62,955 nt of DNA, filler included, from Basidiobolus meristosporus CBS 931.73 (GCA_002104905.1; 3 parts of 3 records of this genome joined end to end with filler, not necessarily neighbours in it); one strand, 5' to 3'; shown: positions 49,001 through 60,701, counted from the whole stretch's first letter. Notes: generated by a model from the letters alone, not told the origin. Numbers and translations are program-made.

Positions 49001-49333
49001 AACCCCTTGACCGTCGCCATGATTAGAAAGATTTACTACCAAAACTAACGGTGGTGTTATCAGCCTTTATTGATGATATTCCTAGTTGCACATATAGTCA
49101 GAAAGGCTTGATTGGTGTGATAGGTGCATCCAATCAGTTTCCACTGAGCATTTGCTTGAGCGGGGAGAAATAAAAGGCCCAGAGGTGACAACGAAGACCT
49201 CATTCAGTTCTAGTCAACCGGTGTGGATAATTCCCTGCAGCAGCCTGACTCCAGAGTTCGTGAAAACAGTAGTGAATCAGCGCTGACCCATTCGAACACT
49301 CCTGTTTATTTTGCATCCAGCCACTCTATCCTG

Positions 49334-49882
49334 ATGAACTTCATTACACACACCCTCTTCGGCCACAAAAAAATACGAAACATGCCCCAGAGCGTGGTTT
49401 CTCCCTATGCCGACATCAAGCCTTCCCAAGCCATGGTGATGACATGCCCTATCTCGGACACCAACTCCTCGGAGCCCGCTCCTGAGGGAACCATCCTTGA
49501 TATCCTGGGAGAAGAGAGAGTTGAGAGAATTGTCGAAAGATTCTACCATTACAATCTCACAGATAAGAACACCAAGCTCTTCTTCCAAGGCATCAATGTA
49601 GAGCGGCTGCAGCGGATGCAGACACGGTTTCTAATACACCTGCTAGGAGGCAAAGCCATCAACACTCGCAAGATGAGGGCTGCCCATAAACGCCTGCTCG
49701 ACCTCAATGATGGGCACTTCGATGCGGTGTTGAACAACCTGAAGAAGGCAGTGAAAGATATGGGGATCAGCCGGGATTTGACACAAAGGATTATGGCCGC
49801 GGCAGAGACCACCAGAGATGATGTCTTGGGCCGGACACCACTCCCCAAGCATCAGCCAGTGGACGACTTAGACTTTGTTTGA
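49334..49882 (+). CDS. Group I (trHbN-like) 2/2 truncated hemoglobin with N-terminal extension, 182 aa, intronless
   Basis: B9-B10 Phe-Tyr (RFY), CD1 Phe (KLFF), E helix RLQRMQTRFL..LLGG, F8 His (MRAAH), LNDGHFDAV, TRDDVL; the first ATG at 49334 is in frame with the ORF-track call. Confidence 0.92.
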   Translation: MNFITHTLFGHKKIRNMPQSVVSPYADIKPSQAMVMTCPISDTNSSEPAPEGTILDILGEERVERIVERFYHYNLTDKNTKLFFQGINVERLQRMQTRFLIHLLGGKAINTRKMRAAHKRLLDLNDGHFDAVLNNLKKAVKDMGISRDLTQRIMAAAETTRDDVLGRTPLPKHQPVDDLDFV

Positions 49883-52554: not shown

Positions 52555-53247
52555 TCAGGGACCAGTATAGACTGAACTACCTTTGGAAGATTGTCTAACT
52601 GCCACCTTTAACTCTGGGTTATTCTTTAATAATTGTGATATATATTTCCCTTGAATAAGAGTGAAGCCGATTCCAAGAAATACCAAGGGACGGTGCCGCT
52701 TTAGCGTGATTAAAGGTAGCAAAGCTTCATCCGTAATGCCCGTACAAACAAATAAAGAAATCCAGGTCACTTTGAGACATCTAGATAGTAGCGTCGAGAT
52801 GCCTCTGTCCGTAAGGTTGAAGCAGTTGTATAGGTCAACTCTGGTGATATTAGGACAATTTTGGGCAATGGTTATGATCATGGAATCGGTGATCATCTCT
52901 TTTCTTCTCACTTGAGAAAGATCAAGCGTTTGCATCAGCACTCCGTACTCCCTAGCTGAGAAATAATCTTCAAAAGTGCGGAAAATATGATATCTCTCTA
53001 AAGCACCGGGCTTCGTTGCCAGGATTGCCGATAATGCCTTACGCCACAGACCACGTATTCTTCGTCGCCTGGTTTGATTTAAGGTATAGACAAGGTAACC
53101 CAAATGCCGGCCCGTCGCTGGTTTGGGATGTGACCATATTAAGGGAGTGGTATGTTCATTCCACTGCTTTGAAATAAACAAACAACAATATTGCTCCTGC
53201 GGTGTAAGATACTCGAAAATATTTGCTATTATATCGTGAGTTAACAT
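52555..53247 (-). CDS. F-box plus leucine-rich-repeat (FBXL/GRR1-like) protein, 230 aa
   Basis: N-terminal F-box (DIIANIFEYL..QEQYCCLFISKQW...PLIW) and cysteine-type LRRs (ITDSMIITIAQNCPNITRVDLYNCFNLTDRGI); the C-terminus could include an unrecognised intron. Confidence 0.85.
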   Translation of the reverse strand: MLTHDIIANIFEYLTPQEQYCCLFISKQWNEHTTPLIWSHPKPATGRHLGYLVYTLNQTRRRRIRGLWRKALSAILATKPGALERYHIFRTFEDYFSAREYGVLMQTLDLSQVRRKEMITDSMIITIAQNCPNITRVDLYNCFNLTDRGISTLLSRCLKVTWISLFVCTGITDEALLPLITLKRHRPLVFLGIGFTLIQGKYISQLLKNNPELKVAVRQSSKGSSVYTGP

Positions 53248-55451: not shown

Positions 55452-56562
55452 ATGACAGTTCAGATGGATATCGAGAGAGGGGCTGATATGGAGGTACAGT
55501 ACGTACAGCCAGTAGAACAGAATATTCAACAGCCGATGCTAAAATTCGCTCAACCTGTGGCCTCAGTTCTAAACATAGACGGCCCAAGCGGGGCTGAGAT
55601 TAAGGACAGTCTGCTGGTCACAACAGTGGAGCCGCAATCGCACCATGGTTGGAGTCGATTGGAAACCGCTAGAAATCAAGTTTGCGCCGAGTTTATTGGT
55701 ACATTCTTGTTGATGTTCTTCTCCTACGCCGGCAACGCCCAGAGCATCCTCTATCAGTCGCAGTTTTCGATTTTGGCCGCCCCCTTGGGTTTGGCGGCGG
55801 GGTTGTACGTCAGTGGTGGAGTTTCGGTAAGATATTTCCGCCTGATTACAATGGATAACCTGGCAAGGACCCAGATTAAGAATTCCGATTATTGACATGC
55901 GTTTCTTGGTTTAAAGGGTGGACATCTAAACCCCGCGATCACCATTTCTTTCGCAATTCACCGCAAATTCCCGTGGCGGAAGGTTCCTCGTTACATCGGT
56001 GCTCAAGTACTGGGTGCATTCTGTGCAGCTCTGTTCGCATTCTTGTATTACTGGCCGGATATCAACCATTTCGACCAAGGGCTTCACCGAGTCACTGGTG
56101 AATTCGCCACCTCAGGAATTTTCGCCTACAACCCCCCTAGTTACCGCAGTAATCTGGCGGGGTTCTTCAGAGAAGTGATCAATGACCTGGTATTTTTGCT
56201 GGGAATCTACGGAATTACCGATGTGAAAAATGGCCAAGCTAATGGCTATGTAGTTCTTGGCGTATCCTTCCATTTCCTGGCGGTATTGGTCTGTTTCGGT
56301 AAGGAAATTTATTTGGCAGCTGGAATGGGTTCCTCGGAGTAGAACTAACTGTGCTCCAATAGGGGGAAATGCTATTAATCCTGCTGGCGATTTTTGTGGC
56401 AGAGCTGTGGCTGCCATGGTCGGTTATGGATCAGAAGTATTCTCCGCAAATAGCTATTACTTCTGGATAACCTTAATTGGTCCCTTTTTGGGAGCGTCTC
56501 TTGGAGGATTGTTCTACCGTCTGTTCATTCATCCCAAAGCCGAGAGCGTTGTGATGAAATAG
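55452..56562 (+). CDS. MIP-family channel, aquaglyceroporin-like, divergent; exons 55452-55826, 55917-56298, 56363-56562 (318 aa)
   Basis: AEFIGTF, SGGHLNPAITI, YIGAQVLGAF, AINPAGDF, YFWITLIGPFLGASLGG; GT-AG introns 55827-55916 and 56299-56362 (CTAAC branch point) restore one open frame. Confidence 0.92.
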
Positions 56563-57758
56563 CTGGCATGGCTGGAAGGATAGTCGGCAAGCCTCCAGAC
56601 TTTCTCGTCGAGCACTTGATCAGAACTACCAACCACTTACCTTCAACACCACACTTTTTGCCAATCTATGCAAATGCATCTTTCACACCTATTTCAACGT
56701 TGACAATCAGCGAAGAAATGTTGATATACTCTGAGGTATACGCCTGTGCCAAAACCCATCCTATCCACCCAATATTCCCATTTAGTATAAAGTGTTGAAT
56801 TTAACAAGTCTTACCTTCGGAACCTGGCTTCGCACCAGCACTGATTGCTCCTTAACTACATAGTGACACCTCATGAGCTGTAATTATATGATTTATAAAC
56901 TAGAATCGTCAATAAACCACCTTTCGGTTGATTTTGCTGCATACAGCTATGTCCAAGTGACTCATTGATGCGTAAAATCTGGGTGGCAAGGGCCGGGGAT
57001 ACGCCCAGTCTCTTAGGATTTTGTTGTTACATCATGGCAATGAAGTCATGGAACCATGACGTCTCTATTTCTGGTGAGTATCTGGGCTTAGGATGGTGTA
57101 TCTATGCCCTGATTAGGATTCAATCCAAGGGTAATATTGGGGGTTCTGGGGATTGACTGATATTCGTGGAAATCTCATTTGCAGTACTGATTGACCGAGC
57201 GGATCTTGATCAGAAATGTGAATCGTAGCCCCCATTTTTGGACATGCTTACATGTTTGTATTTCGATGGTTAAATAAAACAAAGTTGATTAGTGAGTTAA
57301 CAAATGCTCCCCTACATTGATCGAATTCTGGAGCGCAGCAGATTCGATCATTGAGGCACTAGATCAATTTCAATCTGCGATTTCCTTGGCTCACGTACAT
57401 CGTGTTATCAGGAGATTATTGATGTTGATAAGTTACCGATTCTCACCAATGCCATCCTATCGATTACGAATTCATGCCTAAGAACTAAGGATGAGCCAAT
57501 AGTGGGCGAAGGGTTGCCGGATGGATTCCGGATCGGAGAGCTCCAGAAATATACTATCGAAGTATCTATCTTGAACCTTCCACTGGTAGTGGAATTTTCT
57601 ATCCACTTATATTGGCTCCCACTTGCAAGTGATCTAGGCACTGCAGCCTGTTGGCAAGTCACATTCAATCATACTGCCAGGAATCAACATTTTTCAACTA
57701 TTTATCTTCACCTTGGCCTGTTTCTTTCTTCTTTATCGTCTGTTCATCGTTAGTTATC

Positions 57759-58866
57759 ATGACTCAGTTATCCAAACCCGTAATCCCTATCACAGTCTTC
57801 ACTGGCTTCTTGGGCTCTGGCAAGACCACCATTATTCTATCCCTGCTCAACCGAGTCAATCCTGGTTACAAGATCGCTGTACTAAAAAATGAGTTCGGTG
57901 ACGTTGAAGTAGATAGCGAGCTTGTCAAAGAGAGCAATGTGGCGGTTCAAGAGATGCTTAACGGTTGTATGTGTTGTGTTCTCGTTGGACAGATGAAGCT
58001 TGCCCTGATGGAGCTTCAAGGTACTGTCGTCACTTATTTATTGAAGTTCTGCACTGGTTTTTAACTTGTCTTCTATTCCCTTAGAAAAATATAGCCCAGA
58101 TCGTATCATTGTGGAGACTAGTGGCTCTGCTTTCCCTGCTCCCATTGCTTGGCAGATCAGAGAGATGGCTGACGATGGTTTTGTTTTGGATTCCATCATT
58201 ACTGTGGTTGATTGCGTGAACTTCACTGGATACGAAGACACCAGTTATACTGCCAAGATGCAAGCTCAATATACTGATCTGATCCTTCTGAACAAGCATG
58301 AATTGGTTGATGATCGTCAGCTTGATGTAGTAATAGATCACATCAATGAGCTTAACACTGACACCCCCAAGGTCAAATGCGAAGGAAAGACTGGTGTTCC
58401 TCCTGAGGTTATGTTTGGCATTGACACCAAGCTCTTCCAATTGGATGCCAAGAATGAAGGCCAGGCTTTTGATCAAGATCATCATCATAACGAGATTGAT
58501 ATTGTTCAAGTGATCCGCATGGACGACAGCGAAGATCTTAGTGGCCCTGTGCTAGAGAAGAAGGCCTTTGAAAGCTTCCTTGCCAGTTTGCCCAAGGATG
58601 AGATCTACCGAGTCAAGGGATTGATTAAGCTTGAGGAGACTAAAGATGGAAAGACCACCAAGCAGCTCTATATTCTTAACCATGCATTCGGACGTTCCTC
58701 CTTTACCGCTGTCGAACGTGATATCTCTCAAGATCTGGAAAAGCAAAAGATTTTAATCAAGATGACTGTCATGGGACAAGGGCTTCCAATCTATGTCAAA
58801 CGATTCAAGGAAGGTTTCCAAGTGACAGATGAACATGTCACTACCCATCTTAAGGGCCATCATTGA
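57759..58866 (+). CDS. COG0523/CobW-family (G3E) P-loop GTPase, putative zinc metallochaperone; exons 57759-58020 and 58085-58866 (347 aa)
   Basis: Walker A GFLGSGKTT, NEFG, GCMCC metal motif, IIVETSG, LLNKHE, His cluster DHHHNE, C-terminal IYRVKG; intron 58021-58084 is GT-AG. Confidence 0.93.
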
Positions 58867-59618: not shown

Positions 59619-60701
59619 TCATTGGCTCCTGCTGTCATCAGGCAAGTAGGATTCGCTTGGGTACGAATCGTAGCGCGCGTGTGGCAACGGGTTTGCTACC
59701 AGATCAGGATACATGGAAGAGTGCAACCATGAGTCTTCCTCGAGTAGCCATTTGAAATCAAATCCGGTAGTGTCCGGTGCAGGAATGGGTGGGGAGATGT
59801 AATCGTCTTCAGAAATACTGGAATAGTCGTTCACAGCCATGCTTCCTACGCCATGTTTCTTTTTCTTCGACTGGGGAAGGTATGAGCTATTGGGATCATC
59901 AGTGCTCTCATAGCAGGAGTAAAATGGAGCAGGCTTGCTGGTGGGTGGATATGGGAAGTATTGATAAGGAGTAGTGGAGGGGGCGTAGTATGTCTTCAAG
60001 TGGTCGAAGTTTTGTAATTTCGAGGGAGGGCCTTCTAGTGCGGAATCCAGTTCAGAGATGGGAGATTGTTTCCGCTTGGTCTTCGTCCTGTTAGGACTAT
60101 ACTTGTAATCAGGATACTTCTGCTGATGGTCGAGTTTGATCTGCTCAGCCATCCATTGGTATTTGCTCTTTTCCTCAGCCGAGATGTTTTTCCACATTTT
60201 GCCGATTATTCGAGACACTTCCATGTTGGTAATGCCTGGGTTGGATGCGAAGATTTCCGACTGCTTTTCACGACGAAATAGAAAGAAACAGTTTGCTGGT
60301 CGTGGAATTTTGGTTTTCTTCGATTCGGTGGTGGGTTCATCCAGCTCTAGTGTGTCCGAGTTGCTAGAGGGAGAGTCGACGGTGCTGTCTGATGCTAAGG
60401 TCATGAATTGATGCTGGGGCGAATGGATCAGCGCTGGATAGTGGGCGTAGAATGGGTCATGAGGAGTGTGGTGTGACGGTTGCGGATGATAGTAAGCATC
60501 CGGACGAATATATGGATTTGGATACACGCCGAAGTGCGCATTCTCTGACAGGGAAGGATGATACTGGGGTTGAGTATACATGTGGGTGGGGTGTTGCGTT
60601 TGGACATTGGGTGTACCTATGTCGTTTGAAGTGCGGTTGTTGGTGGGGCAGACGTGGTGAGGAGTGGTCTTCATGAATGATGTCTCAGATAATAGTTTCA
60701 A
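59619..60701 (-). CDS. HMG-box transcription factor (MATA/SOX-type box), 360 aa
   Basis: KIPRPANCFFLFR...EVSRIIGKMWKNISAEEKSKYQWMAEQIKLDHQQKYPDYKYSP, flanked by low-complexity His/Pro/Ser/Tyr regions. Confidence 0.92.
   Translation of the reverse strand: MKLLSETSFMKTTPHHVCPTNNRTSNDIGTPNVQTQHPTHMYTQPQYHPSLSENAHFGVYPNPYIRPDAYYHPQPSHHTPHDPFYAHYPALIHSPQHQFMTLASDSTVDSPSSNSDTLELDEPTTESKKTKIPRPANCFFLFRREKQSEIFASNPGITNMEVSRIIGKMWKNISAEEKSKYQWMAEQIKLDHQQKYPDYKYSPNRTKTKRKQSPISELDSALEGPPSKLQNFDHLKTYYAPSTTPYQYFPYPPTSKPAPFYSCYESTDDPNSSYLPQSKKKKHGVGSMAVNDYSSISEDDYISPPIPAPDTTGFDFKWLLEEDSWLHSSMYPDLVANPLPHARYDSYPSESYLPDDSRSQ

Follow-up and report, generated by a model that had tools for sequence, protein, structure and literature searches.

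The arginine of the aromatic/arginine (ar/R) selectivity filter is close to being a defining residue of aquaporins. In the window analyzed here, a stretch of 62,955 nucleotides (filler included) from Basidiobolus meristosporus CBS 931.73, we found a three-exon gene (55452-56562, plus strand) whose 318-aa product belongs to the MIP family and the aquaglyceroporin class and carries a glycine at the position of this arginine. Is such a gene real, how much of the filter has it replaced, and what might a pore of this kind conduct? The aquaglyceroporin TbAQP2 of Trypanosoma brucei, which is Arg-less and has solved structures, carries drugs of >330 Da. The Basidiobolus gene would be a second, independent Arg-less aquaglyceroporin beside it, and one under strong selection.

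Gene structure and conservation in Basidiobolus ranarum

The first-pass annotation of this DNA had proposed a three-exon splice model with an open frame and clean splice sites (Table 1). The frame is indeed open, with GTAAG donors and a CTAAC branch site, and the model is borne out by comparison with the corresponding locus of B. ranarum: the exons are 77 to 80% identical and ungapped, whereas the introns are 36 to 41% identical and gapped. For instance, exon 1 shares 80% nucleotide identity with its B. ranarum counterpart without a gap, and intron 1 shares 36% with 38 gap columns. Reading through intron 1 leads to an in-frame stop in both species, and intron 2 of B. ranarum has a TAA 5 codons past the donor.

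Table 1. Features of the B. meristosporus Arg-less aquaglyceroporin gene, in window coordinates.
Feature	Position	Strand	Description
Exon 1	55452..55826	+	125 codons: 66-aa N-terminal tail, TM1, short loop A, TM2
TM2 filter position	55779..55781	+	GCC, Ala110; equivalent to GlpF Trp48 and TbAQP2 Ile110; Ala also in B. ranarum
Intron 1	55827..55916	+	90 nt, GTAAGA...AAAG
Exon 2	55917..56298	+	127 codons + 1 nt: loop B with NPA1, TM3, loop C, TM4, TM5
First NPA box	55929..55937	+	AAC CCC GCG, Asn130
Loop C residue 196	56127..56129	+	TAC, Tyr196; Phe in B. ranarum; aligns ungapped to TbAQP2 Met196 (HMMER, 8jy8)
TM5 filter position	56286..56288	+	TTG, Leu249; equivalent to GlpF Gly191 and TbAQP2 Val249; aligned to paralogs
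Intron 2	56299..56362	+	64 nt, phase 1, GTAAGG...CTAAC...TAG
Exon 3	56363..56562	+	Shortened loop E, NPA2, half-helix HE, TM6; stop TAG 56560-56562
LE1 filter position	56368..56370	+	AAT, Asn255; equivalent to GlpF Phe200
Second NPA box and next residues	56377..56391	+	AAT CCT GCT GGC GAT = N258 P A G261 D; NPA itself at 56377-56385
LE2 filter position	56386..56388	+	GGC, Gly261; where relatives carry the ar/R Arg

The B. ranarum gene was identified by a word search with the deposited B. meristosporus protein ORX68886.1, which returned one ortholog, a 333-aa "glycerol channel"; the canonical Basidiobolus paralogs are 41 to 42% identical to the query. The B. ranarum locus (L001) is syntenic, with the order of the MIP, cobW, and HMG-box genes kept. 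Joined exons entered three analyses only: codon comparison, alignment, and tree. Database searches were run exon by exon, and the public proteins ORX68886.1 (P0001) and P0151, from B. meristosporus and B. ranarum, respectively, served as stand-ins for the full-length protein.

We compared the codons of 55452-56562 with those of L001:6001-7134. The 318-aa models of the two species align gap-free, at 91% protein identity and 78% nucleotide identity, and their differences fall 28, 13, and 167 times at the first, second, and third codon positions, respectively. These counts correspond to a pN of 0.044 and a saturated pS of 0.80, and so to a pN/pS of about 0.055, with tail and core behaving alike; dS could not be estimated by the Nei-Gojobori method because a pS of 0.80 lies above the 0.75 saturation limit. 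GC3 also differs between the two Basidiobolus species compared (0.53 versus 0.45), which suggests that codon usage or base composition has shifted between them.

The B. ranarum ortholog has the same filter, the same NPAG, and the identical GGC codon, next to a Pro codon that differs synonymously. The search of relatives for NPAG orthologs that had been proposed at the outset thus had a positive outcome, as did the proposed check for selection, since the gene is not evolving neutrally between the two species. The Gly codon was likewise read as GGC in contigs from two runs of one sample (X1 and X2), which show no variant at a word depth of about 108 and may be the assembly's own reads. Contigs from a third organism (X4) are ~90% identical to the gene, with 25 of the 27 listed exon differences at third codon positions; the Gly codon lies outside that list.

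Could the missing arginine nevertheless be spurious, whether through misreading of the Arg codon in sequencing or assembly, through incorrect splicing of the model, or through decay of the gene? One point in favor is that the deposited B. meristosporus protein is incomplete and its gene model includes an odd 34-nt intron. Against it stand the GGC codon in an independent assembly of another species, the open and ungapped frames in both, the collapse of conservation exactly at the intron boundaries, and the agreement of the two runs described above. The first-pass annotation had argued that several coordinated substitutions speak against a sequencing error; the second species shows exactly these filter changes at a nucleotide identity of 78% and a pN/pS of 0.055, which excludes both sequencing error and decay, and we consider an artefactual explanation as a whole hardly credible. 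By the measure of these codon comparisons, the gene is functional and held under strong purifying selection. Such selection implies that the protein has a function and does not say which one.

The deposited gene models fit this structure imperfectly. A HMMER scan of 1.84 billion representatives returned a single protein at E < 1e-30, namely, ORX68886.1, a 253-aa "aquaporin-like protein, partial" of B. meristosporus CBS 931.73; the runner-up was 44% identical over exon 2. In loop E, ORX68886.1 extends exon 2 by 10 codons (KEIYLAAGMG). We rejected this extension, which requires a 34-nt GT-AG intron, is unconserved, and meets a TAA in B. ranarum. The B. ranarum model P0151 retains 45 nt (15 aa) of intron 1 (L001:6376-6491), reading FFSSNDSSYLLLFQK, directly before GGHLNPA. 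This insert was also rejected, because the segment is partly deleted in B. meristosporus and closed there by a stop; it is the sole low-confidence stretch within the core of the AlphaFold model. Judged from the two genomic sequences, the deposited models of both species are slightly wrong and need correcting.

The selectivity filter and its scaffold

Membership in the MIP family is evident from each of the three exons, all of which match Pfam MIP (PF00230): exon 2 with 63.6 bits (E, 3e-17) and exon 3 with 25.8 bits, against a cutoff of 25 bits, and exon 1 alone with 16.6 bits over residues 74 to 125. The deposited proteins carry PF00230 as well. Among solved structures, the best match to exon 2 is TbAQP2, followed by AQP7, AQP10, and AQP3, and a look-alike search of the ESM Atlas with exon 2 returned generic MIP clusters only. 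The AlphaFold2 model of the B. ranarum ortholog P0151 (core pLDDT, >90; loop E, 92 to 96) shows six TM helices and two re-entrant half-helices in an hourglass fold. This model superimposes on AQP3, AQP7, AQP10, TbAQP2, and GlpF with Foldseek TM scores of 0.86 to 0.93 and rmsd values of 1.2 to 2.0 Å. By PDB sequence matches, Foldseek ranking, and the tree described below, the protein is nearer to GlpF, AQP3, AQP7, AQP9, and AQP10 than to orthodox aquaporins. It also has the Froger-type signature after the second NPA box (D262 and R266), both columns of which are invariant in alignment A1.

Within this scaffold, both NPA boxes are intact, as had been noted at the outset. The first lies in the motif GGHLNPA (55917-55937 by translation). 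The second, in the region GGNAINPAGDFCGR, reads NPAGD and not NPARD, and the ar/R Arg that should follow it is absent, with Gly261 in its stead. HMMER aligns NPAGDF gap-free to the NPARDF of AQP3 and AQP7, among solved structures, and to the L264 position of TbAQP2; the first-pass annotation had placed this Gly opposite GlpF Arg206 by eye. Its placement of Ala at GlpF Trp48 was reproduced, with HMMER setting Ala110 opposite Trp48. For the other two positions, Leu at Gly191 and Asn at Phe200, the simplest alignment to the paralogs yields the same residues, Leu249 and Asn255.

The latter two assignments depend on how loop E is aligned. It had been described as about 3 residues shorter than usual, and relative to the Basidiobolus paralogs we see a 3-residue deletion, from G-WMT-GY to G-GN. 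MAFFT's own gapping of loop E, with a 6-residue insertion and a longer deletion, was dropped for this single 3-residue deletion, which we preferred because it keeps the H, A, C, and G of TM5 in the register of the paralogs and matches the predicted end of the TM5 helix. In the P0151 model, this helix ends 3 residues past Leu249 and the half-helix begins at Pro259. The AlphaFold secondary structure of the B. ranarum ortholog thus agrees with the assignment of Leu249 and Asn255.

Taken by alignment, the filter reads Ala110, Leu249, Asn255, and Gly261, compared to W, G, Y, and R in relatives; the W-G-Y/F filter of aquaglyceroporins is accordingly absent (Ala110, Leu249, Asn255). To see how unusual these residues are, we consulted the columns of a 241-row MAFFT alignment, counting relatives without the four rows that are this gene (221 rows at LE2). 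At LE2, Arg is found in 208 rows (94% of relatives) and Gly in 2 of the 221 rows outside this gene. At the TM2 position, Trp is found in 157 rows (73% of relatives), and Ala is found in none outside this gene. As far as alignment can place them, all four ar/R-equivalent positions are replaced, and not one alone.

The changes extend beyond the filter. Eleven family-conserved positions are altered, identically or conservatively, in both Basidiobolus species, and the following ten beyond the filter are altered in both: G91S, G111P, T196Y/F, T215D, L218F, P236Y, I252F, G264C, P265G, and P289T. The last of these removes the signature Pro of TM6 (FW-x-P), which is present in 88% of relatives. The first-pass annotation had also pointed to polar residues in TM4 and TM5, a claim that stands in part: Asn214 and Asp215 are indeed unlike the family consensus, but the E of EVINDL is the family-conserved TM4 glutamate, and the His of SFHF in TM5 occurs in canonical paralogs too. 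Among the residues kept are NPA/NPA, the loop-C motif, and the TM1 and TM4 glutamates.

The N-terminal tail (residues 1 to 66; 55452-55649) is predicted to be disordered (pLDDT, 42 to 56) and lies outside any Pfam match. Its pN/pS of 0.063 shows that it is as conserved between the species as the membrane core, and this degree of conservation in a stretch predicted to be disordered suggests a regulatory or binding role.

Arg-less relatives and the origin of the gene

In a survey of about 400 fungal MIPs, the LE2 Arg was found in all aquaglyceroporin, aquaporin, and XIP subgroups, and only microsporidian SIP-like proteins were without it (PMC4236510). MIPModDB lists 52 Arg-less proteins among >1000 MIPs (PMC4236510). 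Like the Basidiobolus protein, microsporidian SIP-like MIPs, plant SIPs, and mammalian AQP12 have a filter with neither Arg nor aromatic residue (PMC4236510). These proteins, however, belong to subfamilies that are small, basic, or "unorthodox"; their NPA boxes are altered and their LE2 residue is bulky and hydrophobic, whereas the Basidiobolus protein is a typical aquaglyceroporin by sequence, fold, and tree position. At 318 aa, with Gly at LE2 and nested among Zoopagomycota aquaglyceroporins, it does not match the microsporidian SIP-like type.

TbAQP2 (PDB 8jy6, 8jy8, and 8ofx) is a closer parallel. It, too, has an aquaglyceroporin fold and arose in its own lineage as a paralog of a canonical WGYR channel, and in both proteins the TM2 aromatic, the LE1 aromatic, and the LE2 Arg are lost, with the losses stable within the genus. 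As in TbAQP2, every bulky or charged ar/R residue is gone (A110/L249/N255/G261 compared to I110/V249/L258/L264, with A259 counted alongside L258 in TbAQP2). The two proteins differ in how this was achieved: TbAQP2 has NSA/NPS boxes with hydrophobic Leu and Ile, whereas the Basidiobolus protein keeps NPA in both boxes and has Gly, Ala, and Asn, along with the 3-residue deletion in loop E. Moreover, the two are not orthologous and lie on separate branches, and for TbAQP2 a function, drug uptake, has been demonstrated. A dN/dS of 2.0 is also reported for TbAQP2 (PMC7473772).

The nearest relatives are canonical fungal aquaglyceroporins, namely, the Basidiobolus paralogs P0152 to P0154 and the Zoopagomycota "glycerol channels." The canonical paralogs, which are present alongside the Arg-less gene in both Basidiobolus species, share with it NPA/NPA, the D and R after the second NPA box, the loop-C motif, and the length class. 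They carry W/G/Y/R and a full-length loop E, in contrast to the Arg-less protein, in which eleven family-conserved positions differ.

Maximum-likelihood analysis of 67 relatives pairs the two Basidiobolus orthologs with full support, on a stem of 1.23 substitutions per site and with tips of 0.017 and 0.096. The pair falls within a clade of Zoopagomycota and trypanosome aquaglyceroporins that is itself supported, and it adjoins the canonical Basidiobolus paralogs. When the pair and these paralogs are made one clade, the likelihood is higher by 3.6 lnL units, and this grouping is not rejected (p-AU, 0.57). From the tree and the two genomes, the gene probably arose by duplication of a canonical W/G/Y/R aquaglyceroporin in the Basidiobolus lineage, after which it changed rapidly and then hardly at all; a within-Basidiobolus duplication is the simplest history, if not a proven one.

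On present sequence records, the Arg-less gene itself is known only from Basidiobolus. A literature search found no match for NPAG together with fungal aquaglyceroporins, and among the matches to Basidiobolus and aquaporin, neither term stood in a title or abstract. Our searches did bring up other Arg-less proteins of aquaglyceroporin type (P0164, P0168, P0025, P0083, P0118, and P0080), in which the LE2 Arg is replaced in an otherwise aquaglyceroporin-like sequence: an Albugo candida record with NPAGD, proteins of Blastocladiella britannica and Linderina pennispora with NPACD, a 586-aa protein of Puccinia graminis with NPALD, a Coemansia protein with NAALD, and a Logan contig with NPAKD. The Albugo, Blastocladiella, Linderina, and Coemansia proteins retain the TM2 aromatic, whereas the Puccinia protein and the NPAK match do not, and none of these sporadic cases has the loop E deletion. 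In the tree, the Albugo, Coemansia, and Puccinia proteins fall elsewhere, and the Blastocladiella protein falls in the unresolved group that holds this gene. We considered a common origin with the NPAGD protein of Albugo and set it aside, as the tree gives it no support. The Arg-less filter is thus rare and not unique, occurring in T. brucei AQP2, SIPs, AQP12, and scattered fungal cases. The scattered aquaglyceroporin-like proteins form an undescribed set that would be worth a survey of its own.

What the pore may conduct, and the neighboring genes

As to what the remodeled pore does, we lean, if not strongly, toward a filter that would be widened or less selective, and uncharged. In the sequence of events that we envisage, a W/G/Y/R gene would have been duplicated, and a phase of rapid change would then have remade the outer constriction (Trp to Ala110, Gly to Leu249, Tyr to Asn255, and Arg to Gly261). 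The same phase would have shortened loop E by 3 residues, with the MIP scaffold, the NPA boxes, and the aquaglyceroporin signature residues retained. The constriction, deprived of the positively charged Arg and the bulky Trp, would carry no charge and would be wider, or would at least differ in shape. If TbAQP2 is a guide, it might then admit solutes that are normally excluded, such as larger polyols, other organic molecules, and possibly organic cations; the passage of protons would still be opposed by the intact NPA region.

The GlpF filter has a radius of roughly 1.7 Å. In TbAQP2, loss of W/Y/R widens the filter, and the wider, hydrophobic pore admits pentamidine and melarsoprol; either L264R or I110W abolishes pentamidine uptake (PMC7473772; PMC11088622). 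Restoring NPA/NPA in TbAQP2 lowers pentamidine transport by 93.5% (PMC7473772), and given this result and the two intact NPA boxes of the Basidiobolus protein, very large substrates seem less likely for the latter. Because Arg-less filters are rare but known, a wide, uncharged pore is a plausible reading and not a result, and the shortened loop E might even narrow or close the pore.

We find it possible, though a good deal more doubtful, that the filter is remodeled but ordinary. On this account, Leu249, Asn255, and Tyr/Phe196 would rebuild a narrow constriction on the shorter loop E, and the pore would pass water, glycerol, and urea, perhaps with altered kinetics or gating, without taking on a novel class of substrate. 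Residue 196 bears on this argument. It aligns to M196 of TbAQP2, which is listed among the pore-lining filter contacts in a cryo-EM study (PMC11088622), and it is aromatic in both Basidiobolus species, compared to Thr in 83% of relatives by column statistics. Judging from the alignment, Tyr/Phe196 of loop C may offer a substitute aromatic at the constriction. With this aromatic in place, and with the TM5 Gly replaced by the bulkier Leu, the constriction may be partly refilled; Leu249 and Tyr/Phe196 could, in other words, close the opening that the lost residues left. The retention of NPA/NPA, the loop-C motif, and the TM1 and TM4 glutamates is in keeping with an ordinary pore, as is the finding that Arabidopsis SIPs without the Arg conduct water nonetheless (PMC4236510). 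However, when the Arg is lost, the filter is left without its positive charge and its main hydrogen-bond donor, and none of the residues that replace the usual ones is basic; furthermore, TbAQP2, the one Arg-less aquaglyceroporin of solved structure considered here, has a wider filter (PMC11088622).

It is also conceivable, and to our minds quite improbable, that the protein is not mainly a solute channel of the plasma membrane. It might instead join the canonical paralogs in heterotetramers and modulate them, or it might be one of the "unorthodox" MIPs inside the cell, with a pore that is closed or incidental. An intracellular location is the usual description for Arg-less MIPs such as AQP11/12 and SIPs. 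The 66-aa tail is predicted to be disordered and yet matches the core in conservation, which suggests that it has a regulatory role or binds a partner, and canonical paralogs coexist with the gene in both species. Strict conservation of the pore-lining scaffold and of both NPA boxes would be hard to explain without conduction, however, and the tree places the protein among aquaglyceroporins and not in the SIP-like or AQP11/12 groups.

Returning to the widened filter, we can ask how far such a change might go. With the cation-repelling Arg gone, the protein might be a conduit for solutes that MIPs exclude (organic cations, large osmolytes, even inorganic ions) in some lineage-specific task, a bolder proposal that we regard as unlikely. 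Basidiobolus is a soil and gut fungus and causes basidiobolomycosis. Were this proposal true, the conduit could be used for rapid turgor changes or for exchange with the environment of the animal gut; the fungus would then have a natural equivalent of TbAQP2, through which cationic drugs might enter this opportunistic pathogen. Since Basidiobolus causes disease, a wide-pore channel, if present, could matter for drug uptake. The retention of NPA/NPA, with a canonical paralog in the same genome as a control, makes the gene a clean natural experiment on the share that the ar/R filter itself has in selectivity and in the exclusion of cations or protons.

The window also contains several neighboring genes. 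Downstream, a gene for a CobW/HypB/UreG-type GTPase (57651-58866, plus strand) is spread over two neighboring ORFs that meet at 58064/58066, presumably because a short intron or a frame change separates them; B. ranarum has a 347-aa cobW gene at the matching place. It is followed by a gene for an HMG-box protein (59619-60701, minus strand; 360-aa ORF), to which a 354-aa HMG-box gene of B. ranarum is syntenic. On the other side, an ORF at 49223-49882 (plus strand) matches the bacterial-like (truncated) globin family and one at 52555-53247 (minus strand) matches the F-box family; from these matches, both look like ordinary neighbors.
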